Shown here in pieces: positions 775 through 19,057 of a DNA stretch of 64,000 bases. The stretch lies in the sequence record LC680885.1. One strand, written 5' to 3'. A model generated the notes under the pieces. The model saw nothing but the letters and a program-made list of their open reading frames with translations, made no database searches and was not told the DNA's origin. The position numbers were made by a program, and so were the translations under genes. How positions within the stretch are numbered: position 1 is the stretch's first letter; every line of letters begins with the position of its first letter.

Positions 775-1353
775 ATGGAAAAATACTATAAATTTAATTT
801 ATTTGAGTGCATACTAAAAAATATTGGTATGCACTCAGATAAATATGAAAATTTGATAAGTAATATAAATAAAAATTTTACATCTTTATATTTTTATGAC
901 TATGAGATTAATAATAGTGATATAGATAAATTGATATATGATAACATTCAAAAACAATTAATTGATGATAGTTATTTTTTATTTGAAATCAATAATAAAG
1001 AAGAAAGACTATTAGTTGATTTTGAAAATAACCTTTTATATGATAAATATAATGAGAAAATAGGAATGGTTTCTTTAAATAGGATTACTTCTTCTAGAGT
1101 AAATTTATTTTCAGATTTTGAGAATAAATATAGAGATTTAATATTTATGGAAAAAGAAGATATAAAATATGAAAATTTAATTGATATGGGATTTAATATT
1201 GTTACTACTTTTGAAATTTCTACCGTATGTAAAAATAAAATAAATAATTTTAGTTACTTTGGTTTTGATATTAAAGATAATAAAAATAATCTATTAATTG
1301 AATGTGATGAAAAAGAATTCAAAATTAATAAAGTTAAGAATAATTTTATATAA
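775..1353 (+). CDS. Hypothetical protein, conserved-terminus family member
   Basis: SD GAGGT at 763-767 favours ATG 775. N-terminus MEKYYKFNLFE; C-terminus ECDEKEFKINKVKNNFI. Confidence 0.75.
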   Translation: MEKYYKFNLFECILKNIGMHSDKYENLISNINKNFTSLYFYDYEINNSDIDKLIYDNIQKQLIDDSYFLFEINNKEERLLVDFENNLLYDKYNEKIGMVSLNRITSSRVNLFSDFENKYRDLIFMEKEDIKYENLIDMGFNIVTTFEISTVCKNKINNFSYFGFDIKDNKNNLLIECDEKEFKINKVKNNFI

Positions 1354-1381
1354 TTAGAAAAGTTAAAAGATAAATTTATTA

Positions 1382-2131
1382 ATGATTATGAATAAGGAGA
1401 CTTTGAATTTTATGTATAAAGAAGATGAAATGAATACAGGTCATATAGTTGCTGATTGTGATGAAGTTTTAGTAAATATTTCCCCTAAGATAGTTCAATT
1501 AATGCATGAAGATTTTGATTATTACAGTCAATTCTTTAGACTATCTCCAGAGTATAATTACGGTACTCATTACAATACAGTTCTTAATCGTCCTGAATAT
1601 TATATTGACCAATGGTTAGTAAGAAAAGATGTTTATGAAAGATTTTCTGAAGATGAAGTTAATGAAGCTAGAAATAGGTTACAAAATGAAATTATATTTA
1701 AAAAAGATTTATACGATACATTAGAACCAACAAATTTAGCTAAAAGTTTATCATATACAATCAATACACCTTTAATGAATAGATTATCAATTGTAACTAA
1801 AACTTCTGATAATAACTTAAAATCTAAAGAGAAATTTTTGAAAACTTTATTTAGAGGAAGTATGGAAAAGGTTGATATTTATTATCTTGAATCAGATGAA
1901 AAGAAATCAGATGTAATTAATACATTAGGTTATGTTACTAGAATATATGAGGATGAAGTTAGTAATATTAAAGACATTATTATGAATTGTGATAATGTTA
2001 TGCAAACTGGCATCGATATTCCTTCATTAGGATATAACCAAAAATTAGATGAAGCAACTATTATGAAAGCTAAAGAAAAAGAAATAGACTTAAATTATTT
2101 TAGTTATATGAGTAATAGTTTAGTTAATTAA
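1382..2131 (+). CDS. HAD-superfamily phosphatase, 5'(3')-deoxyribonucleotidase-like
   Basis: N-terminal HIVADCDEVLVN fits HAD motif I (DxDxV). Later IVTKT and IYEDE resemble motifs II and IV. Confidence 0.6.
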   Translation: MIMNKETLNFMYKEDEMNTGHIVADCDEVLVNISPKIVQLMHEDFDYYSQFFRLSPEYNYGTHYNTVLNRPEYYIDQWLVRKDVYERFSEDEVNEARNRLQNEIIFKKDLYDTLEPTNLAKSLSYTINTPLMNRLSIVTKTSDNNLKSKEKFLKTLFRGSMEKVDIYYLESDEKKSDVINTLGYVTRIYEDEVSNIKDIIMNCDNVMQTGIDIPSLGYNQKLDEATIMKAKEKEIDLNYFSYMSNSLVN

Positions 2132-2139
2132 TAATTATT

Positions 2140-2168
2140 GCCATGTTAAGTTTATAGCTTAACATGGC
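2140..2168 (+). terminator. Intrinsic terminator hairpin
   Basis: GCCATGTTAAG / CTTAACATGGC 11-bp stem followed by T-rich tracts. Confidence 0.75.
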
Positions 2169-2221
2169 TTTTATATATTTATTTTTTTTTTTATAAAATA
2201 AGATTGGAAGTGAAATGTTAG

Positions 2222-3733
2222 ATGAAAATAGATATGATCAACGTTGATCAAATTATTACAGCCTATGAAGCTAAAGAAGTTACCAATCCTATTTTCTTTG
2301 ATTCAGGAACTTTACCTAAAGAAGACGGTTTATTCTCATATGAAATATTTGGTTTAATAGGTACTGATGAAAGAAAGAACAATGTGGGGTGGATTAATTT
2401 AGGTGGTAAATACTTAAATCCTGTAGCGTATAAAGCTATGAAAGAATTAGATAAGAATATAGATTTATGTATTCAAGGATCTGATTACTTTAAAATTGAA
2501 AAAGGACAATTAGTTCCAGATGAAAATGGTGAAACTGGATTAAATTTCCTATACGATAATTATGAAAATCTTAAATTTAGAAAAAATGATTCTCGTATCC
2601 GAAATGAAAAAATTGATATGCTTAAAAATACTCCTAAAGATAGAATATTTACAGATAAATGGCTTGTAATACCTGCTTTCTATCGTGACTTTAACCCTAA
2701 TGAAACTTCAGGAGAAATTCAAGATACTGAAGAAATAAATGATATGTATGCGAGTATTTTAAGATCTGTAGATTCAATTAGTTTTAACTCATTTGATTTT
2801 GTAGCTAATACGACTAAATATAATATTCAAAATAAATTATTTGAAATATACGTTAAATTAACTTCAGGTGAACTATCAGGTAAAACTGGTATGATGCAAA
2901 GAAATATTTTAGGTAAGACAGTAGATAATAGTACTCGTTCAGTTATTTCATCACCTAAAATCAATTCAAATAAATGGAATGAAATGCAAATTGAATTCGG
3001 TCAATTAGGTGTTCCATTAACTCAATTAGTAACATTGTTCTTACCTTTCTTTAGTAAATATATTATAGACTTTATTGAAATTCATAAAGATGCTTTCCAA
3101 ACTGCTACTGGAACTGATGAAAAGGAATTAACATTAGAAGAAGTATATGAACAATTTGATGATAAATCTATTAAGAATATGTTAGAATACTTTATTAAAG
3201 ACCCTAATGAAAGATTTAGTCCTATATATGTAAATGATAGACAAGGTAAACGTCATAAAGTTAAATTATTTGAAAATACTTTAGGTAGAACTTTTACTGT
3301 AATTGATTTACTTTATATAGCTGCTACAGAAATATGTGAAGATAAGTATGTGGTTTATTCAAGATATCCGATTGAAAATTTCTTGAATGTGGCTCCTGCT
3401 AAAATTAAAATACTAACTACAGTTGATACAATTCCAGAAATTACTTTAGATGATATTGTACTTAAAGATTATCCTAAAGTTGTTCATGAATATCCTGTTG
3501 ATGAAGATGTATTTATAGATACTGCTATTATACACAACAGTTATGCCGGAGCACTTGGTGCAGATTTTGACGGTGATATGATCTCTATTAGATCTTTATG
3601 GACAGTTGAAGCTAATAAAGAAGCTAATAAACTTCTTAATAAGAAAACTAACTATCTAAACTACACTGGTAATTCAGTACGTAATTTGGGTAACGAATCG
3701 GTACAAGCTTTATATTCATTAACTAAAGAATAA
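2222..3733 (+). CDS. rpoC: Phage multisubunit RNA polymerase beta'-like subunit, N-terminal/catalytic part (probably virion RNAP)
   Basis: EDGLFSYEIFG, GWINL, WLVIPAFYRD, GKTGMMQRNILGKTVD, SRYP and the catalytic ADFDGD motif. Virion versus non-virion assignment is inference. Confidence 0.9.
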   Translation: MKIDMINVDQIITAYEAKEVTNPIFFDSGTLPKEDGLFSYEIFGLIGTDERKNNVGWINLGGKYLNPVAYKAMKELDKNIDLCIQGSDYFKIEKGQLVPDENGETGLNFLYDNYENLKFRKNDSRIRNEKIDMLKNTPKDRIFTDKWLVIPAFYRDFNPNETSGEIQDTEEINDMYASILRSVDSISFNSFDFVANTTKYNIQNKLFEIYVKLTSGELSGKTGMMQRNILGKTVDNSTRSVISSPKINSNKWNEMQIEFGQLGVPLTQLVTLFLPFFSKYIIDFIEIHKDAFQTATGTDEKELTLEEVYEQFDDKSIKNMLEYFIKDPNERFSPIYVNDRQGKRHKVKLFENTLGRTFTVIDLLYIAATEICEDKYVVYSRYPIENFLNVAPAKIKILTTVDTIPEITLDDIVLKDYPKVVHEYPVDEDVFIDTAIIHNSYAGALGADFDGDMISIRSLWTVEANKEANKLLNKKTNYLNYTGNSVRNLGNESVQALYSLTKE

Positions 3734-3745
3734 ATTTAAAAAAAT

Positions 3746-3776
3746 GAGGTAACGGACAATTATAGTTCGTTACCTC
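3746..3776 (+). terminator. Terminator hairpin
   Basis: GAGGTAACG / CGTTACCTC inverted repeat just after the stop codon. Confidence 0.65.
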
Positions 3777-3810
3777 TATTATACTGCAAAAACGTATCTA
3801 ATGATATTTT

Positions 3811-3825
3811 AAATTTATATTATAA
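3811..3825 (+). promoter_or_regulatory. Early phage promoter (TATATTAT core) with 5' hairpin at 3832-3852
   Basis: AAATTTATATTATAA; the same motif recurs at nine intergenic sites. Confidence 0.75.
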
Positions 3826-3877
3826 TTATGAAGTTGATAATTATTATCAACTAATTTAAATAAAAGGATGATTTAAT

Positions 3878-4177
3878 ATGAATGAAATTAAAATAATGGA
3901 TACTGAACTACTACAGGAAGCTGTAGAAGGAAAAGAGAATAACGGTGGAGGTTACGAACATACTCGTACCGTTTTCGAATTCCAAGGAAAACAAGGAGTT
4001 TTCGAAGACACTTCTTGTGGTGATTTCGGTAGCAGATTCTTCATGGAATGGGATGGAAAAATGGCTATGTGGGGAAGTATGATTGATGAAGAACTCGAAT
4101 ACAGTGAATTCGATGAACAAGAACAATCAGAACTTCTAAAGCATTTTAGAGTTCCTGTTTTTGAAGAAACAATCTAG
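3878..4177 (+). CDS. Small acidic early protein, stand-alone transcription unit
   Basis: SD AAAGGA; 24 D/E versus 8 K/R in 99 aa; own promoter and terminator. Confidence 0.85.
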   Translation: MNEIKIMDTELLQEAVEGKENNGGGYEHTRTVFEFQGKQGVFEDTSCGDFGSRFFMEWDGKMAMWGSMIDEELEYSEFDEQEQSELLKHFRVPVFEETI

Positions 4178-4196
4178 GACATTAATGTCCTAGATT
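4171..4196 (+). terminator. Terminator hairpin
   Basis: AATCTAGGACAT / ATGTCCTAGATT followed by T-rich tract. Confidence 0.75.
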
Positions 4197-4235
4197 TCTT
4201 TTATTTTTTTTCTAAAAATATTCTATTTTATGATT

Positions 4236-4250
4236 AAATATATATTATAA
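4236..4250 (+). promoter_or_regulatory. Early phage promoter
   Basis: AAATATATATTATAA. Confidence 0.75.
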
Positions 4251-4334
4251 AAATAGATGCAATTAAATATATTGAAAGATGTTGTTTTATATGTAAAGTT
4301 TTAGAAGAATTTAATAAGGGAGCTGAAATAGATA

Positions 4335-4817
4335 ATGATATATTACAAAAATAAAGTAAATGGTGAAATATACGAAGTTAATGATATTCATAGAAAAGAT
4401 GATGCATTTTATTATGTGTTTGGTAATGAATTTAAAAAAGAAAGAATAGGATTATATGAATCAGTGGGTAAAAAAATTGATTTATTTGATAAAGATAAAG
4501 GACATAAAGAATTAAACTTCCAATTAAATTATGACTCATCTAGATTATTTTTAGTTACACATATGAAATATGATAATAATAATCCTTTTGCACCTAAAGC
4601 AGTAGATTTAAAGAATCAAAATTTTGTCGCATCCGATTCTTCAGAAGATCTTTACTATATATTATATAAAAGAATGTGTAATGCAATAGATATACCTTTA
4701 TTAGATTATAATGTATTATTAAAAGAATTTAATTTTGATAATGAAGATATATTTAAAATAATATCAGAAGATTGTAAAGAAGTAAAAGATTTTAAAATTA
4801 GAAATCTTTTTAAATAA
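4335..4817 (+). CDS. Hypothetical, conserved-terminus family; recent paralog of 5545..6036
   Basis: N-terminus MIYYKNKVNGEIYEV; C-terminus FKIISEDCKEVKDFKIRNLFK. Confidence 0.85.
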   Translation: MIYYKNKVNGEIYEVNDIHRKDDAFYYVFGNEFKKERIGLYESVGKKIDLFDKDKGHKELNFQLNYDSSRLFLVTHMKYDNNNPFAPKAVDLKNQNFVASDSSEDLYYILYKRMCNAIDIPLLDYNVLLKEFNFDNEDIFKIISEDCKEVKDFKIRNLFK

Positions 4818-4832
4818 AAGGAGAAATTTTAA

Positions 4833-5534
4833 ATGGAAAATATTAAATTGTATAAAAATCTAGAAAACGGTGATAAATTTACTTTATCTAAAGATGAAAT
4901 TAATAATGGTAGATTTCTTTATAAAGTCATGAAACAAATAAAAAGTAATTTTTATCCATATTATAATTATGAAGACCAACCCATTACAACCAATGGAAAC
5001 TCTTATTTAATTAATAAACAACTGAATTTTCATTTTTATACACATTCTGATATTATTATAAATTTTAAAAATTTAATTGGAATAGATGAAGATATAATAA
5101 TTAAGAGTAATGAAAATAAAGAAAGAAATATTTCATCTTCAATTGTTTGTTTCTCTGATTCTAATACAAATAATGATAGAATTTATGAAAATATATTTCA
5201 AATTGTTTTGAACACAAAAAAGGCTAAGAAAATAAATCGTATGCTAGATAAATATAAAAGCGATAAATATGAAATATCTTCTTATACAATGGATAAAAAT
5301 GAAGTAATTTTTAAAGTTAGTTTCAAACAAGATTATTTGTCTGATAAGAGTAATGACGCTTATGATTCTCTAGATGAATTGATATATTATATGTTAAAGG
5401 ACCTTAGAATTAAGATCGACAATTCGTATATGTATTTTATGGATTATCTAAGATGGAATTTGGAATTTATTGCTGAAGAAATTACTGATAAGGAAGAAAT
5501 TAAAAAATACTTAATTAAAGAAAAATTTAAATAA
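4833..5534 (+). CDS. Hypothetical, conserved-terminus family
   Basis: SD AAGGAG; N-terminus KLYKNLENGDKFTL; C-terminus AEEITDKEEIKKYLIKEKFK. Confidence 0.85.
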   Translation: MENIKLYKNLENGDKFTLSKDEINNGRFLYKVMKQIKSNFYPYYNYEDQPITTNGNSYLINKQLNFHFYTHSDIIINFKNLIGIDEDIIIKSNENKERNISSSIVCFSDSNTNNDRIYENIFQIVLNTKKAKKINRMLDKYKSDKYEISSYTMDKNEVIFKVSFKQDYLSDKSNDAYDSLDELIYYMLKDLRIKIDNSYMYFMDYLRWNLEFIAEEITDKEEIKKYLIKEKFK

Positions 5535-5544
5535 GGAAGTGTAA

Positions 5545-6036
5545 ATGGATATGATATATTACAAAAATAAAGTAAATGGTGAAATATATGAAGTTAATAA
5601 TATTCATAGAAAAGATGATGCATTTTATTATGTATTCAATAATGAATTTAAAAAAGAGAATTCGTCTTTTTATAAATCTTATGGTAAAAAGATTGATTTA
5701 TATGATGAAGACGTAGGAATTATAAAATTGGAGTTTTTCTTAATTTATGATTTTATTAATCTTCATTTAACTACACACTTTTCTTGGGATTTTAATAATA
5801 TTCCTTTTATACCTAAAAATATAGAATTAACAAATCAAAATTTTGTCATATCAGACTCTTCAATTGATCTTTATTATTTATTCTATAAAAGAATATGTGA
5901 TGTGATAGATATAAATATGGCACATTATAATATTCCATTAGGAAAATTTAATTTTGATAATGGAGATATATTTGAAATAATATCAGAAGATTGCAAAGAA
6001 GTAAAAGATCTTAAAGTTAGAAATCATTTTAGATAA
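5545..6036 (+). CDS. Hypothetical, conserved-terminus family; paralog of 4335..4817
   Basis: The first ~30 codons are nearly identical to 4335; C-terminus FEIISEDCKEVKDLKVRNHFR. Confidence 0.85.
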   Translation: MDMIYYKNKVNGEIYEVNNIHRKDDAFYYVFNNEFKKENSSFYKSYGKKIDLYDEDVGIIKLEFFLIYDFINLHLTTHFSWDFNNIPFIPKNIELTNQNFVISDSSIDLYYLFYKRICDVIDINMAHYNIPLGKFNFDNGDIFEIISEDCKEVKDLKVRNHFR

Positions 6037-6041
6037 GGAGA

Positions 6042-6227
6042 TTGATAAATATGAGAAAAGAAATTAGAAAAAATGAAAGTAAACAATTGACTTTACAAGA
6101 AAAATGGGAAATTGATGCAGAATTATACAGAGAGAAAAATAAAGACAAGAAAAAAATAAAAGGGCCAATTATAGGAAAGAAAGTTTCTAAAGAAGAAATG
6201 GAAAGAATCTTAAAAGGAGAAGAATAA
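6042..6227 (+). CDS. Small basic hypothetical protein
   Basis: SD AAGGAG; ATG at 6051 is an alternative start; operon-packed. Confidence 0.7.
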   Translation: MINMRKEIRKNESKQLTLQEKWEIDAELYREKNKDKKKIKGPIIGKKVSKEEMERILKGEE

Positions 6228-6228
6228 A

Positions 6229-6882
6229 ATGTTTAATCACAATATCTTACTATATAAACCTATTAGCATTGATTATAATGATTTTATTGAGTTAAACAAA
6301 GAAAAATATAAAAATGATAGAGAATATATTAAAATGATAAATGTATTTAACTTAATGGAACTGTTAAAAATAGACTCTTTTAAAGATAAAACTTTCTTTG
6401 AAACTGAATGTAAATTAAAATTAAGAGGTTATGATGAATATAAAAATATAAAAGTGGTTTACAATCAATCATTAGACAGTGATCCAATATTCTCTAATTT
6501 AAAAAACTTTAATGCAGAATTAGATATTATAAGTAAAGAAAGAGATAATACTTATATGACTGAAGAATTATTATATGAATACAATATGATGAAAATGAGC
6601 ACATGTATAAATGATAAAGCTAACACTATTACAATTAAAATAAAAAATTTCATTAATTCAAATAAAGAAAATTTTAATAACGATTTTGAATTCCTTATTA
6701 AAGAATTTGAAAATAATTTATTAAAGAATTTAACAGACCTCCATAAATATGAAGACTTACAACTTCTAATTAATAGTGAATATCACAGTTTAAAAGATAT
6801 TAGTGTATATAATGAAAAAATATTTAGACCTGCTACTGATAAAGAGTTTAAGAATTATTTAGTTAAAAAAGGATTTAGATGA
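6229..6882 (+). CDS. Hypothetical, conserved-terminus family
   Basis: C-terminus IFRPATDKEFKNYLVKKGFR. Confidence 0.85.
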   Translation: MFNHNILLYKPISIDYNDFIELNKEKYKNDREYIKMINVFNLMELLKIDSFKDKTFFETECKLKLRGYDEYKNIKVVYNQSLDSDPIFSNLKNFNAELDIISKERDNTYMTEELLYEYNMMKMSTCINDKANTITIKIKNFINSNKENFNNDFEFLIKEFENNLLKNLTDLHKYEDLQLLINSEYHSLKDISVYNEKIFRPATDKEFKNYLVKKGFR

Positions 6883-6893
6883 AAATATGTATT

Positions 6894-6908
6894 AAATATA
6901 TATTATAA
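6894..6908 (+). promoter_or_regulatory. Early phage promoter with 13-bp 5' hairpin at 6913-6943
   Basis: AAATATATATTATAA, then GAGATAATGAATT / AATTCATTATCTC. Confidence 0.8.
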
Positions 6909-6975
6909 AAATGAGATAATGAATTAATATAATTCATTATCTCTATATTAATTTAATTAGGAGAGTGAAAAAGAT

Positions 6976-7584: not shown

Positions 7585-7598
7585 AGGAGATAGATATA

Positions 7599-8219: not shown

Positions 8220-8232
8220 GGATAGAATAAAT

Positions 8233-8796: not shown

Positions 8797-8813
8797 AATA
8801 AGGAGGATTAAAT

Positions 8814-9437
8814 TTGGATAAGTCATTATATGTATCGGATATATTCGATGAGAAAGTTATAGGAAGAAAGGATCTTAATAAAGATGAACTTTTTGATTTG
8901 TCATTTAATACAATTTTAAATAATTCTGCTGACACTAGATTTAATAAAGAAGGAATTAGGTTAATGTTATCATTTTCAAAAGGATTAATTTTAAAATTTG
9001 ATTATGCAGACAAATATTTTTATGTGAAAGATTTTATATTTTTAATAGAAAAAGTTGATGGTAACTATGAATTTAATTTTACATTAAGTATTCCAGAATT
9101 TGCAGACAGTGAAATTGAAATTGAATTAGGAATTTTTGAATCGGATAAAGGTCATAGAGAATTTTATTTTAATGATTTTTCTTATTATAAAGAAGGAAAA
9201 ACTTTATTAGAAAGAGCTAAAGAATATTTAATATACGATATTTTTAATAATTATGGTGTTATTTTTAGTATTTTTTCATTAAAAGACAAAAATAGAATTT
9301 TAACAGACGATAATTTTATCATAGATAATAATGATATAGATGAATTTTATAGTCTAAAAAATATAGATAACGTATTTAGAGAAGTAACAAACGAAAAAGA
9401 AATTAAAGAATACTTAGTTCAGAAAGGATTTAGATAA
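8814..9437 (+). CDS. Hypothetical, conserved-terminus family (TTG start)
   Basis: SD AAGGAGG; C-terminus VFREVTNEKEIKEYLVQKGFR. Confidence 0.85.
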   Translation: MDKSLYVSDIFDEKVIGRKDLNKDELFDLSFNTILNNSADTRFNKEGIRLMLSFSKGLILKFDYADKYFYVKDFIFLIEKVDGNYEFNFTLSIPEFADSEIEIELGIFESDKGHREFYFNDFSYYKEGKTLLERAKEYLIYDIFNNYGVIFSIFSLKDKNRILTDDNFIIDNNDIDEFYSLKNIDNVFREVTNEKEIKEYLVQKGFR

Positions 9438-9438
9438 A

Positions 9439-10050
9439 ATGAAAATAGACTTAGAATCTTATGAATACTATTACCATGATGAAGAAAAAATATTAGTTCC
9501 AGTATCATTAGATATGAAGAAAGAAAATGCAAATGAGTTAATGACGTTTGAATATTATAAGAAAGTTTTTAAAAGTTTTAATCATAATATATTTCATAAA
9601 AGAATTCATGATGATAATATACTATTTAGTACTCGATTAAATAAAGTGATTAACAAAAGTACTGGTATATCAATACCTACTTATGATTTATATATACATT
9701 TTGAAATAGATAACTCATTAAATATTATTTCCTTAGAATTAAGTTTTTCAATGGATACAAATCACTTTGATTTATTTAGAACATTCTATAAAGATAAAAT
9801 AGAAGTTATAAATTTTTCAAAGACAGATTTTTTAAAATATAATCAAAATGTAGATAATTTAGAAGATAAAATGGCATGTCTATTAGCTAAATTATTCTTT
9901 GATATGCACAATGATGAAAATGAAGATATTGAAATATATGTAGACAATTTTTACCATGAATCACTAGACATAGCTAAGCCATATAAATATTTTAGATTGA
10001 TGGGAGAAAAAGAAATAAAAAATCTAGCAACTAAAAAAACTTTTAAATAA
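9439..10050 (+). CDS. Hypothetical, conserved-terminus family
   Basis: The SD lies in the upstream gene's KGF codons; C-terminus YFRLMGEKEIKNLATKKTFK. Confidence 0.85.
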   Translation: MKIDLESYEYYYHDEEKILVPVSLDMKKENANELMTFEYYKKVFKSFNHNIFHKRIHDDNILFSTRLNKVINKSTGISIPTYDLYIHFEIDNSLNIISLELSFSMDTNHFDLFRTFYKDKIEVINFSKTDFLKYNQNVDNLEDKMACLLAKLFFDMHNDENEDIEIYVDNFYHESLDIAKPYKYFRLMGEKEIKNLATKKTFK

Positions 10051-10107
10051 TTTAATTAACTTTCTTTTATATTAATAAATACAATGAAAGAGAGTTGAAT
10101 ATAATAA

Positions 10108-10887
10108 ATGTCTGAAACTAATGAAATTGATTTAATATCACAAATCAATGATATGATGGATGAATATAAGATGTTAGTAAAATTTAAAGATAAAATGGAA
10201 AATAAAGAAATTCAATTAGAAAATCGTATACAGGATTTAACTAAGAATTTGAAATATCCTAAACATACATTCGTATCTAATATGGAAGCTAACATTATTA
10301 GTGTAGAAAAAGAAATTAAAGACACTATTATGCAAATGAAAAATGTTAAAAAAGATATTATTGACTTAACTATGAAAGCTCAGAAAATGGCTGAAGATGA
10401 TGAATCTGAAGATAATTATAAAACTCTTGCTAAAAATGTACTTAATGAGCTTAATAATATGTCTAATAAAGATATTTTAAACAGTATGATGGAACCTGAA
10501 GAAGTAAATGATGAAGATACTGATTTTAGTGAAGAATTAGATGCAAAATTGTCACAATTAGATGAAGAAGAGAAATCTATTAATAAAGAAGTAGATCAAA
10601 AAGAAGAATTGAGTCAAGAAATTAATGAACTAGATCAACAAGATTTATCTTCTATATTAAAAGTCTATAAAGGTACATTACAATTCTTTGTTGTAGGAGA
10701 TTCTCCTGAAGAATATGAATTAGTAGTTGCTGATATGGATATGAATATTATTGAAGAAGATGAAATGGAAGATGAATACCCAGAATTATTTACTATGACT
10801 AGAGATCTTATCTTTGAAGATGTTGAAGGTAATGATGAAATAGTTAAAGATGAATTTGGAAATATTTATCAAAAAGCAGAATTTTAA
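10108..10887 (+). CDS. Acidic coiled-coil hypothetical protein
   Basis: Heptad-rich N-half, D/E-rich C-half; AACT-N6-TA at 10058-10069 upstream. Confidence 0.8.
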   Translation: MSETNEIDLISQINDMMDEYKMLVKFKDKMENKEIQLENRIQDLTKNLKYPKHTFVSNMEANIISVEKEIKDTIMQMKNVKKDIIDLTMKAQKMAEDDESEDNYKTLAKNVLNELNNMSNKDILNSMMEPEEVNDEDTDFSEELDAKLSQLDEEEKSINKEVDQKEELSQEINELDQQDLSSILKVYKGTLQFFVVGDSPEEYELVVADMDMNIIEEDEMEDEYPELFTMTRDLIFEDVEGNDEIVKDEFGNIYQKAEF

Positions 10888-10897
10888 ATTATTTTAC

Positions 10898-10928
10898 CCC
10901 ATAATATATTAATACAATATATTATGGG
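10898..10928 (+). terminator. Terminator hairpin
   Basis: CCCATAATATATT / AATATATTATGGG. Confidence 0.65.
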
Positions 10929-10956
10929 TATTTATTATATATGAAGGCTATGTGTT

Positions 10957-11322
10957 ATGGGATTTGAGTTAACGATATATGGAATAAATAAAAGTAAGCA
11001 AAGAGATTTACAATGGTATATTAATCATCATAGATATACTAAAGAGAAGAATCATTTATTTGAATTGGAATTATATAAACCACATGAACTTTTTGATGTA
11101 TTAAAATATAAAGTAATTAATTATAAAAATGAAGATGGTTTTGATATTCAAGTAATAGATGAAAATACTTTAAAAGAGTTAATGGAAAATGAATTAAGAG
11201 AAAATAATTTTGAATATGGCTTAACTCAATATTATGAACTTATGACTGAAATATCCAGAAATAAATATTTTATAAATAATGATAAATTTGATTTTTACCT
11301 AATTTTAGATACATCATTTTAA
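10957..11322 (+). CDS. Hypothetical protein
   Basis: 121-aa ORF with phage-like codon usage. Confidence 0.75.
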   Translation: MGFELTIYGINKSKQRDLQWYINHHRYTKEKNHLFELELYKPHELFDVLKYKVINYKNEDGFDIQVIDENTLKELMENELRENNFEYGLTQYYELMTEISRNKYFINNDKFDFYLILDTSF

Positions 11323-11343
11323 TAATAGGAGAGTGAAATAGAT

Positions 11344-11469
11344 ATGTTAAAAAGATTATACAATTTATTAACTAAGAAAAAATTTGAAAGAAGATTATAC
11401 GACTTTAGATTTAATTATCAAGATCATGAACATTTAAATCAAGTTCATAGAGATTCAAATAATATTTAA
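11344..11469 (+). CDS. Small hypothetical protein (41 aa, not in the ORF track)
   Basis: SD AGGAGAG upstream; MLKRLYNLLTKKKFERRLYDFRFNYQDHEHLNQVHRDSNNI*. Confidence 0.6.
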   Translation: MLKRLYNLLTKKKFERRLYDFRFNYQDHEHLNQVHRDSNNI

Positions 11470-11488
11470 TATGAAAGGATGATTATTA

Positions 11489-11890
11489 ATGCTATCAGAA
11501 TACAGATTAAATTCAAGTAAAGAAGACATTAAACAGCTATTAAGAGATTATGGTTTTAAAAAAGATTCTTATACTAAAGCTTTATTATATAGAAAACGTG
11601 TAACTGACCCAAATGATATTTTATTTATAGTGGCCGAAGTAGTTATTGAAACTAATTCAGATCTAGTTAAATTAAATTACTATGATAGTAAACATAATAG
11701 ATTTAATCCTTCTAATGAATCACCAGAAGTTCAAAAAGGTTTAAGTATATTAGAAGATATGAAAGAAAAAGAATTATTAATTGAACCAGAGTTAACTCAA
11801 AATGAAGAAGAAAAAGAAGTTCTTGATAGACTTAAAGAACAACGTGAAGAAATGGAAAATGGTCAAGTATCACCCAATTCTGAAAATTAG
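11489..11890 (+). CDS. Hypothetical protein
   Basis: SD AAAGGA; 133 aa. Confidence 0.8.
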   Translation: MLSEYRLNSSKEDIKQLLRDYGFKKDSYTKALLYRKRVTDPNDILFIVAEVVIETNSDLVKLNYYDSKHNRFNPSNESPEVQKGLSILEDMKEKELLIEPELTQNEEEKEVLDRLKEQREEMENGQVSPNSEN

Positions 11891-11893
11891 AAT

Positions 11894-11908
11894 AAATATA
11901 TATTATAA
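11894..11908 (+). promoter_or_regulatory. Early phage promoter with 12-bp 5' hairpin at 11916-11945
   Basis: AAATATATATTATAA, then ATCCCAATACTA / TAGTATTGGGAT. Confidence 0.8.
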
Positions 11909-11970
11909 AAATGTTATCCCAATACTATTAAATTAGTATTGGGATTATTATAATAAAAGGAGTTAAGTAA

Positions 11971-12747
11971 ATGGAGAAAATTAAAAAATACTACATTAGT
12001 AAATCGAAAGATGAATTTATGGAATTAACTTTCAATGAAAATGAAACACTCTATTTTGACTTTAAGTGGAAAGTTTTAAGTGAGCTATTCACTACAATGC
12101 AAATAAATTATAATAAGAGATTTCTTATATCTCATGAAGAACATGATGACAATGGTTTAGTTGGTCTTAGAATAAATTTCAATGCTTTTCCCACAGTTAA
12201 ATACAAATATAAGGGTAAGAAAAATAAAATGGAACTTCTTATATACGCTATAATACGCTTTAGTCTAAATGAAGAAGACGATAATTATATTAAGTTTAAA
12301 GCTGTTCCTTTATATAATAATAGTGAAATAGGGAAAAGATTATTTAGTAAAAGATCTGGTATATTTGATGATAATGGTGAACTAAATTTACCGCATGACT
12401 TTAATGAAGAAGTTATGATTCGTTTTTTAAAATATTTTAAAAGTCATATACAAAAAGGTAAAAGACCTTTAGAACTCAAGGATGATTTACACAAGATGTT
12501 TACTACTACAAATAAATTAATTTTTGAATTACTAGATCAGATACAAGATCATTCAGATATTGAATTTCTTATTGCACCCGATTGGGATTTTAGTGGTAAA
12601 GAAATGGAAAAAGAAAAAGGTTTTAGTTTTGAAAAAGAATATGATAAGTATATCAGTTTAAATGATTTCGATGTTGATGCATATTTTAGAGAAATAACTG
12701 ATGAGAAAGAGATTAAAAAATTTAAAGTTAAGAAAGGATTTTCCTAA
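11971..12747 (+). CDS. Hypothetical, conserved-terminus family (subfamily with 14346 and 15144)
   Basis: N-terminus KKYYISKSKDEFMEL; C-terminus YFREITDEKEIKKFKVKKGFS. Confidence 0.85.
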   Translation: MEKIKKYYISKSKDEFMELTFNENETLYFDFKWKVLSELFTTMQINYNKRFLISHEEHDDNGLVGLRINFNAFPTVKYKYKGKKNKMELLIYAIIRFSLNEEDDNYIKFKAVPLYNNSEIGKRLFSKRSGIFDDNGELNLPHDFNEEVMIRFLKYFKSHIQKGKRPLELKDDLHKMFTTTNKLIFELLDQIQDHSDIEFLIAPDWDFSGKEMEKEKGFSFEKEYDKYISLNDFDVDAYFREITDEKEIKKFKVKKGFS

Positions 12748-12748
12748 T

Positions 12749-13567
12749 ATGAAAAATAATACAAAATATTTTATAGATAAAAAAAGAGATGAATTAATTG
12801 AAATTGATAAAGAATATCTTAATCGATATGAGTATATTGCACACGTATTAACTGTCATTGATATGAATAAGCTTTTATATATTGAAGATCATGCTAGATC
12901 CTTTATAAATGGTATTAATATTGAAGAAAATGATGTGGGAAATGGATTGACTTTTAATAATATAGAAATTCATAATAATATCCATTTCAAAAATATAAAT
13001 AGTAAAAATAATGCGTATAAAAATTTTAATACCGATTTTTATATAAACTTCTTTATTGATAGAATGGATAAAGTTAAAACTCAGAATTTTAAGTTAAAAT
13101 TTAATTTTTATAATTCAATATATAAAGAATATTTTAATAAAATTACCAATAATTTATTAAATGAAGATAATTTAGTCAATGAAGGAGTAAATAAAGAAAT
13201 AAGATCTCTTATGAATTTTGAATTATTTAAAAAAGAGTTATATAATACTAAATACAATAATAGTGAATATTTAAATCTTTTTGAAAATTCATCATATATG
13301 AAGGACAATGTTATTGGATTTATAAATAAATTTGAAGGATTATTTTCTAGTGTAATATACCAAAATAACCTTAGTGTATTAATGACTCTTTATGAAATAA
13401 AATACATGTATGAAGATGACATAGATTTTTATATTAATTTTTATAATGAAAATTATGGTTTAGTTAATATATTAGAATTAATCGAAAGTGATGAAAATGA
13501 TTTATTTAAAGAAATTAAAACAGAAAAAGAAATGAAAGCGTTTAAAGTTAGAAAAGGATTCAAATAA
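12749..13567 (+). CDS. Hypothetical, conserved-terminus family
   Basis: Likely start ATG 12749, with SD AAAGGA inside the upstream KKGF codons. N-terminus KYFIDKKRDELIEI; C-terminus LFKEIKTEKEMKAFKVRKGFK. Confidence 0.85.
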   Translation: MKNNTKYFIDKKRDELIEIDKEYLNRYEYIAHVLTVIDMNKLLYIEDHARSFINGINIEENDVGNGLTFNNIEIHNNIHFKNINSKNNAYKNFNTDFYINFFIDRMDKVKTQNFKLKFNFYNSIYKEYFNKITNNLLNEDNLVNEGVNKEIRSLMNFELFKKELYNTKYNNSEYLNLFENSSYMKDNVIGFINKFEGLFSSVIYQNNLSVLMTLYEIKYMYEDDIDFYINFYNENYGLVNILELIESDENDLFKEIKTEKEMKAFKVRKGFK

Positions 13568-13588
13568 TATAAAGAAAGGATTTTTGTA

Positions 13589-14329
13589 ATGGAATATAAT
13601 AATTACTATAGATATAAATTAGATGGAAAAATACTTCACTTTGATATGGATAGAACTGATTTACGTAGAGATAAATTGGCTGAAATATTTACTAAAGTTA
13701 AGATGGAATATATTTATAAAGATAAAAAAATGATTAAAAAAGCAAGAAACTTTATTTACCGATCTAATCTTTCTTTAGAGTATTCTCATTTTAAAGATAA
13801 AGTATTTGTAATCAAACAAATTTCTAAAATGCTAAGTAAAAACAATGTAAGGGATTTATTAATTTACGATACGGATCTTAGTTTAGAATTTAATTCTATT
13901 TTAGACGGTGGTATATTTAAAAAAGATTTTCCAGAAGGATCCTTTTATGAAAAAATAGAAAGTAATATGAATAGAAAATATTTAATTTTAAGTGATAATA
14001 TAAGACACACTAGTGAAAGTTTTGTTGATTTATATGATAAAGATTATATTTTAAATTTTGAAGAAGTAGAATTGCTAGTCAAAGAATTTAATAAAACTCT
14101 TTTAAATTATCTTATGGATTTAATGAGTTATGGAAATCTAGAATTAAAAGTTAGAAAATCGGAGTTAGCATATTTTATGACAGGAATATATACAAAAATG
14201 GAAGAAAACGAAGATAAGTTATTCCCTATATTTGATTATAAATTTTTACTTAATGAATCTGGATTATTTGAAGAGATTACAGATGAGAAAGTTATTAAAG
14301 AATATTTAGTGAAAAATAATTTTAAATAA
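13589..14329 (+). CDS. Hypothetical, conserved-terminus family
   Basis: C-terminus GLFEEITDEKVIKEYLVKNNFK. Confidence 0.85.
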   Translation: MEYNNYYRYKLDGKILHFDMDRTDLRRDKLAEIFTKVKMEYIYKDKKMIKKARNFIYRSNLSLEYSHFKDKVFVIKQISKMLSKNNVRDLLIYDTDLSLEFNSILDGGIFKKDFPEGSFYEKIESNMNRKYLILSDNIRHTSESFVDLYDKDYILNFEEVELLVKEFNKTLLNYLMDLMSYGNLELKVRKSELAYFMTGIYTKMEENEDKLFPIFDYKFLLNESGLFEEITDEKVIKEYLVKNNFK

Positions 14330-14345
14330 AAAGGAGATCAATGTA

Positions 14346-15128
14346 ATGAGTATAAATAAAAGTCATAAAAAATATTTTTTGAGTAAAATGACAGATGATT
14401 TATTTGAAGTTACTAACTTATACAGATATAATATAAATGAAGATTATTTATATCTACCTCAATTACTTTCTAATTTACAAGTAAAAAGTAATGAAGAAAT
14501 AAATATACTTTCTGAAGAGATTGTTGGTAAAGATGATAATGGAGAGAATTTATGGTCAGGAACTATATCAGCTGGATATATTTTTCCAGTTATCAAATAT
14601 AATGTTAATAATAAAAAGACAACGAATATACTTATTATTGATTTTGATATTATTTTCAACGAATCAATAGAAAATGAAAACTATTTAAAAGTTAGAATTG
14701 AAAATCCATACTCTTCAGGTATAAATTCAATAATTTTTAATAGCGTTATTGGCAATATATTAGATGAATCCAATTCTTTAAAAGTACCTTTTAGATTTCA
14801 TATAAATAGCATGGAAGATTTAATATCAGATTTTAATAATGGTACAGAAAATGATTTTAGAAATAATAAAGATTTATACCAAATATTAGTTGAAGTAAAT
14901 AGTTCTATATTGGAAATTTTATCACAAATTAGAGATCATTTTGATATAGAATTCTTTGTATCAGATGGTTGTTTCTCGCACATACCAGAGAATGATAAAA
15001 GAGATAATGATGATATAGATGATAAATACTATAATTTATTTGACGAGTATAAAATGTCTGGAGTATTTGAAGAGATTACAGATGAAAAGATTATTAAAAA
15101 ATATTTAGTGAAAAATAATTTTAAATAA
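14346..15128 (+). CDS. Hypothetical, conserved-terminus family
   Basis: N-terminus KKYFLSKMTDDLFEV; C-terminus GVFEEITDEKIIKKYLVKNNFK. Confidence 0.85.
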   Translation: MSINKSHKKYFLSKMTDDLFEVTNLYRYNINEDYLYLPQLLSNLQVKSNEEINILSEEIVGKDDNGENLWSGTISAGYIFPVIKYNVNNKKTTNILIIDFDIIFNESIENENYLKVRIENPYSSGINSIIFNSVIGNILDESNSLKVPFRFHINSMEDLISDFNNGTENDFRNNKDLYQILVEVNSSILEILSQIRDHFDIEFFVSDGCFSHIPENDKRDNDDIDDKYYNLFDEYKMSGVFEEITDEKIIKKYLVKNNFK

Positions 15129-15143
15129 AAGGAGATTAATATA

Positions 15144-15941
15144 ATGGGTGTAATTAAAAGTAATAAAAAATACTTCCTATGTAAAATAAATGATGAATTA
15201 TTTGAAGTTGATAAGAACAATAGAGATTCATTTTTATATGACTATTTACCTTTAATAATAGCTGAAAAAATAATTAATTCAACTGAAAAAGATTCATATG
15301 AAACTAGTGCATTGGATGTTTATTATAAAAAAGAAGATAACATAATTGAAGGGAATTTAAAATTTTTAGCAAGATGTTTACTTCCCGTCCTGTATAATTT
15401 CAATAATAAAAATTCATTTAAAACAGTTATGACTATCGCAGATTTTAAATTTAAAAGAGATGCTAATAAATCTACTTTTAGTATAGATAAAAATAGTGTT
15501 AATGATAAAATACTATTTCAAATGAGACCTTTAGGAAATGAAATTGATGATATTTTATTTAATAGTATTATAAGTGACCTTTTAAATGAAAATGACGAAA
15601 TAGAAATGAAACAAATGTTATTAATTGGTAATTTTGAAAAATTGTTAAGTGAAATTGATAATCAAAATATAAAACATCATGATGATTTTAAAATTTTAAT
15701 CAAAGATATATTCAATATTTATCTTAATTTATTAAACTCATTAAGTCATCATTTTAATATTGAATTTTTCTTTTCTGAATCTTCTTTTCTAGACATGTTA
15801 AATATTTATGATTATGATATTATTAATAATAAAGATAGTTATAAAATAAATATTTTTGAAGATGATTTAGATGGAATATTTGAAGAGATTACAGATGAAA
15901 AATTTGTTAGAGAATATTTAGTGAAAAATAATTTCAAATAA
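15144..15941 (+). CDS. Hypothetical, conserved-terminus family
   Basis: N-terminus KKYFLCKINDELFEV; C-terminus GIFEEITDEKFVREYLVKNNFK. Confidence 0.85.
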   Translation: MGVIKSNKKYFLCKINDELFEVDKNNRDSFLYDYLPLIIAEKIINSTEKDSYETSALDVYYKKEDNIIEGNLKFLARCLLPVLYNFNNKNSFKTVMTIADFKFKRDANKSTFSIDKNSVNDKILFQMRPLGNEIDDILFNSIISDLLNENDEIEMKQMLLIGNFEKLLSEIDNQNIKHHDDFKILIKDIFNIYLNLLNSLSHHFNIEFFFSESSFLDMLNIYDYDIINNKDSYKINIFEDDLDGIFEEITDEKFVREYLVKNNFK

Positions 15942-15997
15942 AATTAAAAATTTATAGTAACGGAAATATATTTATCAATAGGAGTTGAAACTGGATA

Positions 15998-18733
15998 ATG
16001 AAGATTAAAAGATTAAAGTTAAAGAATTTTATCGGTATTTATGCTGGTATGGGATTAAAAGAAGTTGAAATTGATTTTAGTAAAAGTAAAAATAATATGA
16101 TTATGCTTCTTGGAGATAACGCTTCAGGTAAGACGACAGTTATGTCTAATCTTAATCCATATAGAGAAACTAATGATCAACGTAAAACTATAGTATTAGA
16201 AGATGAAAAAGGTATAAAAGAGATTGATTATATTAAGGGTAATGATGTTTATGAAATTAAACATCATTATGGTAAAAACAGTTCTCAAAATAAATCATTC
16301 ATTAAGAAAAATGGTGAAGAACTTAATGAAAATGGTGGTATTAAATTATTCAATGAAATAGTAGATAAAGAATTAGGTGTATCTAAAGAATACTTTACTG
16401 TAGGTCGTTTAGGCGATAACGTATCAAACTTCATTGACTATACTACAGGTGATCGTAAATCATATATCAATAAATTTGTACCTAATATTGATAGATACTT
16501 AGAAGCTTATAAAGTAGCTAATGAGAAATTAAAAATTATTACTAAAGATTTAAAATCACTTAGATTTGATTTAGACAAATATAAAGAATTTGATGAAATC
16601 AAAAAAGAAAAAGAGAATTTAGAAACTTTAATTGATCAATTACAAAATGAACTTGATGAAGCTAATAAAGATAAAACAACTCATGAAACTAAAATGAATT
16701 CTATCATGGAAGATAAGTACAAAGAGATTCATCCAACTGAATATAAAAATCAATTAATTAATGAAATTAATGAACTTAATCAAGAATTAGAAAAAGAAAG
16801 AAAGTTAAAAGAAGATAATGAGAATTTAAATAAATATACTATTGAATCCGCTAATGAGAAAAAAGATAAAATAGATACTATATTAAATAATACTAATAAT
16901 GAGTTGACTTCTGTTGAAAAAGATAAAGAGAATAATCAAGATAAATTAGATGATTTAATCAGTAGAAAATCTAAAATAGAATCTCGTATGAATGCTATCA
17001 AATTTAATGAAGATTATGATGCTTCTGATGAAATTGATTCAATTCTTGAAGGATATAAAGAAGATTTAGAAGGTATTAAAGATGATGTAGATATTTCTAG
17101 AGGGTCTTTTGTAAGTGAATTCGGTTTACAAATTAAAGATAATATTAAAGAGGATTCATTAAGATTATATGTAAATGATTTAATTTCTAAGGTAGATAAT
17201 TTTAAAGAATTTATTAATGATAATGAATTTAAATATGGTTCTATTCGTGGAGATTTTGAAAGTGAAATTAAAGATAATAATGAAAAAATTTCTATGAACC
17301 AGAATGAATTTAATGAAATTAATACTAAGCTTAATCAAATTAAAGGCAAATCAGACTTATTAAAAATATTAGATCAAAAAGATCATGATCACTATAATGA
17401 ATGTGTATTTGTTCCTTTAGTAGCTGACTTTAAAGACAATGAATTTGATTCAATCTCTGAATTAGAAAATAAAGGTAATCAACTTTATAAAGATAATCAA
17501 GAATTAGAAAAAGATAATAAATTATTATCTAATCATATTGACTTATTACGTAAATTTAATGACATACTTACTAGTAGAAATAGTTTAATTGAATATATTG
17601 GTTTTGAAATGATTGATATTGATAGTATTGAAGAAATATTTACAAATGGTAATACATTCTCTAGTGAACTAAATAGACTTAATTCATTAATTGAAAAGAC
17701 AAATGAAATTCGTACTAATGAAACTAATAGAGATAAATTGACTATTGAATTAGAGAGAAAAGAAAATGCTCTTAAAGAAGATTATTCTAATAAGAAAATA
17801 TTAGATCAATATAAAGAAGATAAAGAAGATTTAGTTAAACAAATTGAAGAAATTAAAAATAAAAATAATGAAATTTCTGAGAATCTTAATTATCTTAATG
17901 GTCGTAAAGAAAAAGCAATTACTAACTTAAATATTATTAATGAATTTATTAATCTAACAGAGAGATCTGAAGAAATTAAATTAAAAATGAAAGATAAAAA
18001 TGATATAGTTGATGACATTGATAAGGATCTTTCAAAATTAAGTAATTTATATGAACTTAATCAAAAAGCAGACAATAAAATTCAATCTATTAAAGATAAT
18101 TTAACTATGAAGAAAAATGATTTAGAATCTACTAAAGAAAAATACTTTGCAGTTAATTCTATTATTACTAAGATTGATGAAATTGAATCAGTGTTATGGA
18201 AATATAATATGGTGGTAGATTCATTAAATCCTAAGAAAGACTCTATACCATTAATATTCATTACTAATTATCTTAAAGATATTGCAGTAAGTACTAATGA
18301 ATTACTTTCAGTTGCTTATAATAATTCATTTAAAATTGACTTTGACTTAACAGATAAAGATTTCTTTATTAATGTGTATAAAGGTAATGGAACTGAGCTG
18401 AAAGATATTAAAGAAGCTTCTCAAGGAGAAACAGCTTTAACTAATATTAGTTTATCTTTATCATTATTAAACAAAGTATCTCAAGATTATAATATTCTAT
18501 ATTTAGATGAAATGGATTCAACGTTAGATTCTAATAATAGAAGAAGATTTGTTGATGTAATTGATAGACAAATTGAATTAATGGGTCTAGAGCAAGTATT
18601 CTTAATTAGTCATAATGATGAATTCTATAGTGCTAATATTGACTTAATTTTACTTAAAGGATATGAAAGTAAAATTGATATTAATAATGAAGAAATGATG
18701 CAAGGTAAAAATGTATTATTTAAAGTAAACTAA
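15998..18733 (+). CDS. sbcC: SbcC/Rad50-like SMC ATPase
   Basis: Walker A GDNASGKT, long coiled coil, signature ASQGE, Walker B/D-loop LYLDEMDSTLD, H-loop LISH. Confidence 0.92.
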   Translation: MKIKRLKLKNFIGIYAGMGLKEVEIDFSKSKNNMIMLLGDNASGKTTVMSNLNPYRETNDQRKTIVLEDEKGIKEIDYIKGNDVYEIKHHYGKNSSQNKSFIKKNGEELNENGGIKLFNEIVDKELGVSKEYFTVGRLGDNVSNFIDYTTGDRKSYINKFVPNIDRYLEAYKVANEKLKIITKDLKSLRFDLDKYKEFDEIKKEKENLETLIDQLQNELDEANKDKTTHETKMNSIMEDKYKEIHPTEYKNQLINEINELNQELEKERKLKEDNENLNKYTIESANEKKDKIDTILNNTNNELTSVEKDKENNQDKLDDLISRKSKIESRMNAIKFNEDYDASDEIDSILEGYKEDLEGIKDDVDISRGSFVSEFGLQIKDNIKEDSLRLYVNDLISKVDNFKEFINDNEFKYGSIRGDFESEIKDNNEKISMNQNEFNEINTKLNQIKGKSDLLKILDQKDHDHYNECVFVPLVADFKDNEFDSISELENKGNQLYKDNQELEKDNKLLSNHIDLLRKFNDILTSRNSLIEYIGFEMIDIDSIEEIFTNGNTFSSELNRLNSLIEKTNEIRTNETNRDKLTIELERKENALKEDYSNKKILDQYKEDKEDLVKQIEEIKNKNNEISENLNYLNGRKEKAITNLNIINEFINLTERSEEIKLKMKDKNDIVDDIDKDLSKLSNLYELNQKADNKIQSIKDNLTMKKNDLESTKEKYFAVNSIITKIDEIESVLWKYNMVVDSLNPKKDSIPLIFITNYLKDIAVSTNELLSVAYNNSFKIDFDLTDKDFFINVYKGNGTELKDIKEASQGETALTNISLSLSLLNKVSQDYNILYLDEMDSTLDSNNRRRFVDVIDRQIELMGLEQVFLISHNDEFYSANIDLILLKGYESKIDINNEEMMQGKNVLFKVN

Positions 18734-18769
18734 AATTTGTTATTAAAAATTTGAGAGGAGTAGATCTAT

Positions 18770-19057
18770 TTGATTCTTAATGTTAATAAAACTTTAGATG
18801 CTAAATTGGAAAAAGAAATGCAGGATGATATTAGAACTGCATTCATTGATAGTACGTTATCACCAATCCTTTATAAAAAATTAGAAGATTTATGTGAAAT
18901 TCATGATAAAGATATAAAACTTTATTATAACCATGATATGATAGAATTTAAAGAATTAAGAAAAAGTTTGATTAGATTTTATAAAGAAAATAATTTAGAT
19001 GAAGACGAATTCATTATAAAGATTAAAAAAGAAGTTATTAAAGATACATTTAAATAG
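18770..19057 (+). CDS. Hypothetical; weak match to the conserved C-terminal motif
   Basis: SD GAGGAG, TTG start; ends FIIKIKKEVIKDTFK. Confidence 0.7.
   Translation: MILNVNKTLDAKLEKEMQDDIRTAFIDSTLSPILYKKLEDLCEIHDKDIKLYYNHDMIEFKELRKSLIRFYKENNLDEDEFIIKIKKEVIKDTFK

Follow-up and report, generated by a model that had tools for sequence, protein, structure and literature searches.

What unites a run of dissimilar hypothetical genes in the genome of the Staphylococcus jumbo phage S6? The question is raised by a stretch of 64,000 nucleotides (the window; LC680885.1, bases 62001–126000, record coordinate = window coordinate + 62000), in which 15 open reading frames (ORFs), all on the + strand between positions 775 and 15941, carry a similar C-terminal motif, hereafter the tag. 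The ORFs are named here by their start positions in the window. Our analysis shows that protein-level selection keeps two short ends of the encoded proteins constant, the N-terminal one a beta-hairpin, the C-terminal one a strand and a basic helix with a near-invariant Phe at position −2. We lean towards regarding the family as a clade-specific expansion of early cytoplasmic proteins built on one scaffold with constant ends.

Two constant ends of the tagged proteins

The earlier note on this DNA had described a common ending in the ORFs from 775 to 15144, and a C-terminal motif of about 20 residues is indeed shared by all 15 of them. Of the window's 631 six-frame segments, a profile of the last 22 residues matched these 15 and no other, the next score being noise. 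In leave-one-out scoring every member reached 8.8–41 bits, whereas the best of 140 other C-termini in the window did not exceed 4.2 bits. The result is not circular, since members left out of the profile still score in that range, and the same comparison with other C-termini rules out a composition artefact of the 22% G+C genome. ORF 18770, previously proposed as a weak member, scores at noise level; it falls among the other C-termini (≤4.2 bits) and is therefore not a member. The interleaved genes (6051, 10108, 10957, 11344 and 11489) lack the tag, as had been suggested. Any two members are, on average, 43.5% identical over their last 20 residues and 16.5% identical over the middles as aligned, the latter being about what optimised alignment of unrelated sequence yields.

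Column shares were taken over 106 distinct tags from 128 members, with positions counted from the C-terminus. The most constant residues are Phe at −2 (99%) and Lys at −10 (90%) and −13 (80%). Hydrophobic residues occupy −11 (98%) and −6 (94%), acidic residues −12 (80%) and −14 (76%), and basic residues −1 (83%). Among tag codon pairs encoding the same residue, 27% are not identical, and 28% would not be if each codon were picked at random according to the usage of these genes. The tag is thus saturated at synonymous sites, and therefore conservation acts on the protein and is old.

This codon analysis rules out the tag as a DNA-level element, such as a promoter or terminator, or as a gene-conversion tract. 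A broader version of the same idea, in which the repeated 3′ ends serve as a DNA or RNA element (promoter, terminator, translational coupling site or recombination cassette) or reflect recent gene conversion, could draw on the position of the tags, 1–20 bases upstream of the ribosome-binding site of the next gene, and on DNA similarity between phages, which often resumes inside the tag. However, the synonymous sites are as scrambled as independent draws, and the motif occurs in one reading frame only, exactly at ORF C-termini, so that we consider this explanation scarcely credible.

The last 14 residues carry a net charge of +1 to +4 in all 15 window members. The mean hydrophobic moment of the tag helix is 0.21, below the background of 0.26, which rules out a membrane-targeting amphipathic helix. 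The tagged proteins are soluble and 140–300 residues long, with mostly acidic bodies (isoelectric point, pI, 4.4–5.9), and no hydrophobic segment long enough to span a membrane was found in any of them.

The weak N-terminal motif noted earlier is also real, although less pronounced than the tag, and appears as an enrichment of an aromatic pair. Such a pair lies within the first 13 residues of 21 of the 35 tagged S6 proteins (11 of the 15 in the window), in comparison with 13 of 178 other long ORFs. Seven positions after the pair, Gly (12/21) or Asp (4/21) is found, followed by a hydrophobic stretch. Judging from the sequences, the four window members without the aromatic pair have a similar hydrophobic-aromatic variant.

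Divergent bodies and a possible common scaffold

The middles had been called unalignable by eye. For body comparisons, the first 25 and last 24 residues were removed, and profiles were built from orthologues in seven phages. In hhalign, only the window bodies 11971, 14346 and 15144 were linked (probability 97–98%), every other pair remaining at or below 14%. Body-only jackhmmer searches also joined each of 4833, 6229 and 7599 to a sub-family present in relatives but not in S6; the set included 241 other S6 ORFs as negative controls, none of which was drawn in. The middles thus form at least ten classes unlinked by sequence methods, apart from four small linked groups, and homology along the whole length across the family was not detected with hhalign or jackhmmer on the trimmed bodies. 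Many full-length pairings obtained by BLASTP without composition correction were due to the ends and to composition, and were lost after trimming. The assignment to one paralogous family is based on two tests, namely a shared motif far above chance and the arrangement in same-strand tandem arrays.

Database searches give the bodies no known relatives. Against Pfam-A and/or PHROGs v4, only sub-threshold chance matches were obtained with the 15 members in the window and with 10 tagged proteins encoded elsewhere in S6; against NCBIfam, 10 window members produced no match above threshold; and a profile search of solved proteins in the PDB found no relative (best expect value, E, 0.38–0.44).

The protein encoded by ORF 14346 (260 residues, 25 aligned sequences) was modelled by AlphaFold2 as a single compact alpha/beta domain, with a predicted local distance difference test score (pLDDT) of 79 and a predicted template modelling score (pTM) of 0.83. 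The model begins with an N-terminal hairpin (residues 8–13 and 19–23), continues with a helix, a five-stranded antiparallel sheet and further helices, and ends with the tag as a strand (241–244) and a helix (247–259) at pLDDT 83–89. The earlier suggestion that the two ends fold together is borne out in part: hairpin and C-terminal strand and helix are both confidently predicted within one compact domain. The model of ORF 4335 presents the same order of secondary-structure elements, fewer in number, in a poor model.

A Foldseek search of the PDB with the 14346 model returned no solved fold (best E 0.09, template modelling score, TM, ~0.15), so the predicted fold appears to be one not seen in solved structures. 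Among predicted viral structures the same model matches eight unnamed proteins. Four of them (249–286 residues) match well and evidently represent the sub-family of 14346 itself. Three shorter ones (206, 202 and 215 residues) align over the full length at 10–16% identity, with TM of 0.49, 0.46 and 0.29, respectively; matches of this size class (202–215 residues) have E of 3e-5 to 4e-4 and a probability of 0.97–1.0, and judged by length alone they probably represent other sub-families. These figures are consistent with one shared architecture, without proving it. The unlinked middles may speak for the hypervariable insert of the earlier note, and the full-length alignments for one diverged fold.

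The following model is, on balance, the one that we prefer. One scaffold would be common to all members, and the constant ends would belong to the folded domain, serving as a structural clasp, as an interaction face common to all members, or as both. The variable body would give each copy its own target. Synthesis would take place early, from promoters read by the RNA polymerase carried in by the virion, and the proteins may then work as cytoplasmic binders, diversified for host takeover or counter-defence. That they serve host takeover or anti-defence at all is only a guess. As a by-product, the 60 conserved bases coding for the tag could supply patches of similarity where whole gene cassettes exchange.

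Several points weigh against this model. Support for a shared fold comes from a single good model, together with TM-scores that are borderline and refer to library models of uncertain quality. The 4335 model is poor (pLDDT 47.6) and reaches a TM of only 0.47 against a library protein 94% identical to 4335 itself; model quality therefore strongly limits the TM figures. Lys at −13 and −10 is conserved beyond the usual need of a purely structural helix, which favours a shared binding partner. Early expression of the tagged genes is something we infer from the promoter motif alone, and the ratios of nonsynonymous to synonymous substitution rates (dN/dS) of the bodies, given below, lie below 1 and are no proof of positive selection.

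The conserved lysines lead to an alternative in which the tag, possibly in combination with the N-terminal hairpin, would be a portable signal for docking or sorting that brings otherwise unrelated cargo to one hub; this hub might be a protein of host or phage, a compartment, or a machine. Such a signal would explain why at least ten middle classes are unlinked by sequence methods, why average identity in the tag is still 43.5% when that of the middles is down to noise, why a net positive tag with near-invariant Lys sits on mostly acidic bodies, and why the tag persists in a more divergent metagenomic relative. However, the tag is predicted as a confident strand and helix inside a compact domain (pTM 0.83), none of the tagged proteins tested has a recognisable domain, all being orphans, and the full-length Foldseek matches reach shorter family proteins, probably of other sub-families; moreover, the tag is not amphipathic and no hub candidate emerged. 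We therefore hold such a signal to be a tentative alternative, which may deserve attention but is rather unlikely. A more specific form, in which the constant ends make a docking module plugging ~35 divergent early proteins into one hub, and the tag DNA is a crossover point for new cargo cassettes, seems to us unlikely to a slightly greater degree.

Of the two options raised by the earlier note, a separable sorting signal is thus the less supported: the tag is predicted to be folded, occurs only on orphans, is not amphipathic, and is present on none of 15 virion proteins of phage UFV_DC4 (DC4). A single scaffold and a docking role are not mutually exclusive.

Tandem arrays, putative early promoters and turnover

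The 12 kb around the tagged arrays is 100% identical to S6 (LC680885.1, bases 66000–78000) and 82–98% identical to nine other Staphylococcus jumbo phages (PALS_2, UFV_DC4, PB50, MarsHill, Madawaska, AH12, Machias, LY01 and SA1). G+C content across the tagged region is 20–27%, and its genes are all annotated as hypothetical in S6. The tagged genes form same-strand tandem arrays flanking a conserved block between the gene for the virion RNA polymerase beta-prime subunit and that for an SbcC-like ATPase (Table 1).

An AT-rich early-promoter consensus, common with phage AR9, read by the virion RNA polymerase and located upstream of 29 genes, has been described in the MarsHill preprint. The proposal that three sub-clusters each begin at an early promoter agrees with the presence of an exact 14-mer containing the published octamer at 4241, 6899 and 11899, which suggests a promoter at each boundary. 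The window holds only four exact copies of the 14-mer, including these three; S6 as a whole has eight, four of which directly precede a tagged gene. Intergenic gaps inside the arrays are 1–21 bases long and carry ribosome-binding sites, and therefore each array is probably one transcript.

At 6899–6943 and 11899–11945 a strong hairpin, its stem 12–14 bp long, comes no more than a few bases after the 14-mer, the hairpin sequences being different. The first boundary is organised otherwise, with a terminator-like hairpin (4171–4196) upstream of the 14-mer (4241–4254).

The family is real but had been under-counted at about 15–16 members. When the S6 genome was scanned piece by piece with an iterated tag profile, ~35 tagged ORFs were found, all on one strand and a few of them weak, which corresponds to ~13% of the 273 annotated features in the S6 record. 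Their record positions are 47.7 kb (one), 58.3–60.3 kb (three), 62.8–77.9 kb (the window's fifteen), 179.5 kb, 213.5 kb, 218.5–221.9 kb, 240.3 kb and 242.9–246.9 kb (six), ~20 of them thus lying outside the window. At 218.5–221.9 kb there is a tandem run of seven tagged proteins of ~150 residues each with a very clear N-terminal motif.

The search of related phages that had been suggested shows 9–16 tagged genes in the matching region of each of six relatives. A 17-kb metagenomic contig (Logan ERR10857033) from a more divergent, uncultured relative has the same gene order and 13 tagged genes; its array also includes an untagged gene (6773–7483) whose product has a hydrophobic N-terminus. A full HMMER search with the family profile against 1.84 billion protein representatives returned only 18 at E ≤0.001, all of which resemble proteins of the S6 phage clade. 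A scan of IMG/VR gave 592 pattern matches, none of which was confirmed, and in Bacillus phage AR9 and Listeria phage LPJP1 the corresponding regions of 41 kb are free of tagged genes, AR9 having only five small genes at the site of the S6 arrays. The tagged family is confined to AR9-like jumbo phages of Staphylococcus and greatly expanded there.

ORF 10108 (10108–10887), part of the conserved block, encodes an acidic untagged protein of 259 residues homologous to AR9 g142 (31% identity over 213 columns, E 2e-6); therefore the arrays look like clade-specific insertions on either side of the conserved block. A similar gene lies at the position of S6 10108 in phage LPJP1.

Between orthologues the tagged bodies have dN/dS of 0.2–0.8, below 1 in nearly all pairs; in two near-identical pairs the ratio exceeds 1, resting on very few differences. 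The bodies are still under constraint. For comparison, the SbcC-like ATPase, the RNA polymerase piece, a deoxyribonucleotidase-like gene and the untagged interleaved genes have dN/dS of 0.05–0.26, with two values near 0.35 (0.06–0.36 for the untagged block 10108–11890), and the middles diverge 5–40 times faster than neighbouring genes. Between S6 and MarsHill, neighbouring proteins are 97–98% identical and tagged bodies only 41–94%. The synonymous rate (dS) of several "orthologues" is also several times that of the neighbours, which points to replacement by a more distant allele and not to faster mutation. Tags change less than bodies between orthologues; in ORF 6229, for example, the body is only 41–45% identical to that of most relatives, and the tag 75–83%.

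Close relatives also differ in gene content gene by gene, through gain, loss or replacement of whole genes. If a relative lacks the counterpart of an S6 gene, the two DNAs often become similar again inside the last 60 bases of that gene. This fits cassette exchange at the tag, although conservation of the tag alone could also give it. Fast divergence and gene turnover together fit an arms-race arsenal.

Relaxed dN/dS, up to ~0.8 in divergent pairs, and copy numbers differing between relatives might equally be expected if the arrays were decaying or selfish duplicates without present function, whose ends are merely slow to change. We regard this as highly improbable, given that all 15 window reading frames are intact and have ribosome-binding sites, that dN/dS is below 1 in nearly all pairs, and that the ends are conserved throughout the clade, including the distant metagenomic relative.

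This phage group packages proteins, among them the virion RNA polymerase, and other jumbo phages have paralogous families of packaged proteins; the tag could accordingly be imagined as a capsid-loading signal, with the tagged proteins entering the cell together with the DNA. However, no tagged member occurs in the DC4 virion proteome, a shallow one of 15 proteins, and no tagged gene is marked as virion-associated in the MarsHill, Machias and PB50 annotations, where only the neighbouring ATPase is. The genes are, in addition, located behind early-promoter motifs and not among late structural genes. Loading into the capsid is, in our estimate, very unlikely. A tagged gene as the "virion associated protein" of MarsHill was considered and rejected, this label belonging to the neighbouring SbcC-like ATPase.

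The ATPase gene (15998–18733), directly after the last tagged gene, encodes a 911-residue SbcC/SMC-like protein, named "virion associated protein" in the MarsHill, Machias and PB50 annotations. The virion RNA polymerase beta-prime piece (2222–3733) and the DNA polymerase gene (19350–21071) are uninterrupted in S6; according to annotations, beta-prime and DNA polymerase genes are split by introns or homing-endonuclease genes in MarsHill, Machias, PB50, AH12, PALS_2 or AR9. The GenBank start of S6_0720, at 12701, implies a 47-base overlap with the tag of the preceding gene; it is probably too early, since translation from the ATG at 12749 yields an N-terminus in keeping with the family motif and with the relatives.

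Table 1. Tagged genes, putative promoters and interleaved genes of the S6 window (window coordinates; scores in bits refer to the tag)
Feature	Position	Strand	Remarks
Tagged member, 192 aa	775..1353	+	Solitary, upstream of virion RNA polymerase beta-prime gene; weakest tag, 8.8 bits leave-one-out; aromatic-pair N-motif present; orthologues in MarsHill and PALS_2
Early-promoter-like 14-mer	4241..4254	+	Ahead of sub-cluster 1; exact copy
Tagged member, 160 aa, window's smallest	4335..4817	+	Tag profile; 67% identity to 5545
Tagged member, 233 aa	4833..5534	+	15.6 bits leave-one-out
Tagged member, 163 aa, recent duplicate of 4335	5545..6036	+	Tag profile
Small untagged interleaved gene	6051..6227	+	ORF 6042 of the earlier note; GenBank start is 6051
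Tagged member, 217 aa	6229..6882	+	Tag profile
Early-promoter-like 14-mer (6899–6912), then 14-bp-stem hairpin (6913–6943)	6899..6943	+	Ahead of sub-cluster 2
Tagged member, 202 aa	6976..7584	+	Tag profile
Tagged member, 206 aa	7599..8219	+	Tag profile
Tagged member, 187 aa	8233..8796	+	38.8 bits
Tagged member, 207 aa, TTG start	8814..9437	+	Tag profile
Tagged member, 203 aa, degenerate tag	9439..10050	+	10.4 bits leave-one-out
Untagged block of four genes (10108, 10957, 11344, 11489)	10108..11890	+	Between tagged clusters; without tag by profile
Early-promoter-like 14-mer (11899–11912), then hairpin (11916–11945)	11899..11945	+	Ahead of sub-cluster 3
Tagged member, 258 aa, long sub-family	11971..12747	+	Body homologous to 14346, hhalign probability 98%
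Tagged member, 272 aa from ATG at 12749	12749..13567	+	Tag profile
Tagged member, 246 aa	13589..14329	+	41 bits
Tagged member, 260 aa, confident structure model	14346..15128	+	Tag profile; AlphaFold2 pLDDT 79
Tagged member, 265 aa, array's last	15144..15941	+	Just before SbcC-like ATPase gene; body homologous to 14346, hhalign probability 97%
Not a member, 95-aa ORF	18770..19057	+	Tag score at noise level; no PHROG match

Comparison with known systems and significance

No published description of the family was found in full-text literature searches, in agreement with the earlier note; the MarsHill, DC4 and PALS2 genome papers and a jumbo-phage review are silent on it. A comparable case is Bacillus phage G, with a lineage-specific zinc-ribbon family of roughly 35 copies (Iyer et al. 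2021, PMC7824862). Both expansions comprise dozens of paralogues in one jumbo lineage, in similar number and with a presumed regulatory or conflict-related role. Unlike the phage G family, the S6 family has no recognisable domain, is conserved only at its ends, and has bodies unlinked by sequence.

The closest analogue for a docking tag is found among poxvirus ankyrin-repeat proteins, which attach to a single hub of the host through an F-box-like (PRANC) domain at the C-terminus. They likewise make up a large, fast-evolving paralogue family combining a variable target-binding body with a short constant helical C-terminal piece. The differences are that no relationship in sequence or fold was found, that the host is bacterial, and that the S6 body is not a repeat protein. 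Internal proteins of phage T4 have N-terminal capsid-targeting sequences that are cleaved off, and phiKZ-like phages have paralogous inner-body proteins, both being late and present in virions. They resemble the tagged proteins in having a short shared terminal signal on different phage proteins, or in forming paralogue families of jumbo phages. The S6 family differs in that its tag is at the C-terminus and its genes lie behind early-promoter motifs; none of its members is listed in the DC4 virion proteome.

The organisation of the arrays recalls the hyperplastic regions of T4-type phages, which are flanked by early-promoter stem-loop cassettes. Common to both are arrays of small variable genes that are early (in S6 probably so), promoter-plus-hairpin units at cluster boundaries and the swapping of individual genes among relatives. 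The element shared in T4-type phages is a piece of intergenic DNA, whereas in S6 it is a motif of the protein, and all genes concerned are members of one family. A similar combination of a constant module with variable, diversifying ones is seen in the polymorphic or polyvalent conflict proteins that phages and plasmids encode, but those are long, multi-domain and made of recognisable domains, while the S6 proteins are small single-domain orphans.

In these Staphylococcus aureus jumbo phages roughly every eighth gene is a member of this one family, so that a large share of their "hypothetical" genes reduces to a single question. The unusual pattern of constant ends, a fast and unalignable middle and one-by-one gene replacement offers a concrete handle: the tag profile finds every member in new genomes, and the constancy of the ends suggests a structural or binding role common to all members. 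If a docking role were true, it would mean a tagged adaptor or effector system in a phage, with a logic like that of the F-box-type adaptors of large eukaryotic viruses. Since these phages are considered for therapy and are known transducers, the function of their largest gene family would be useful to know.

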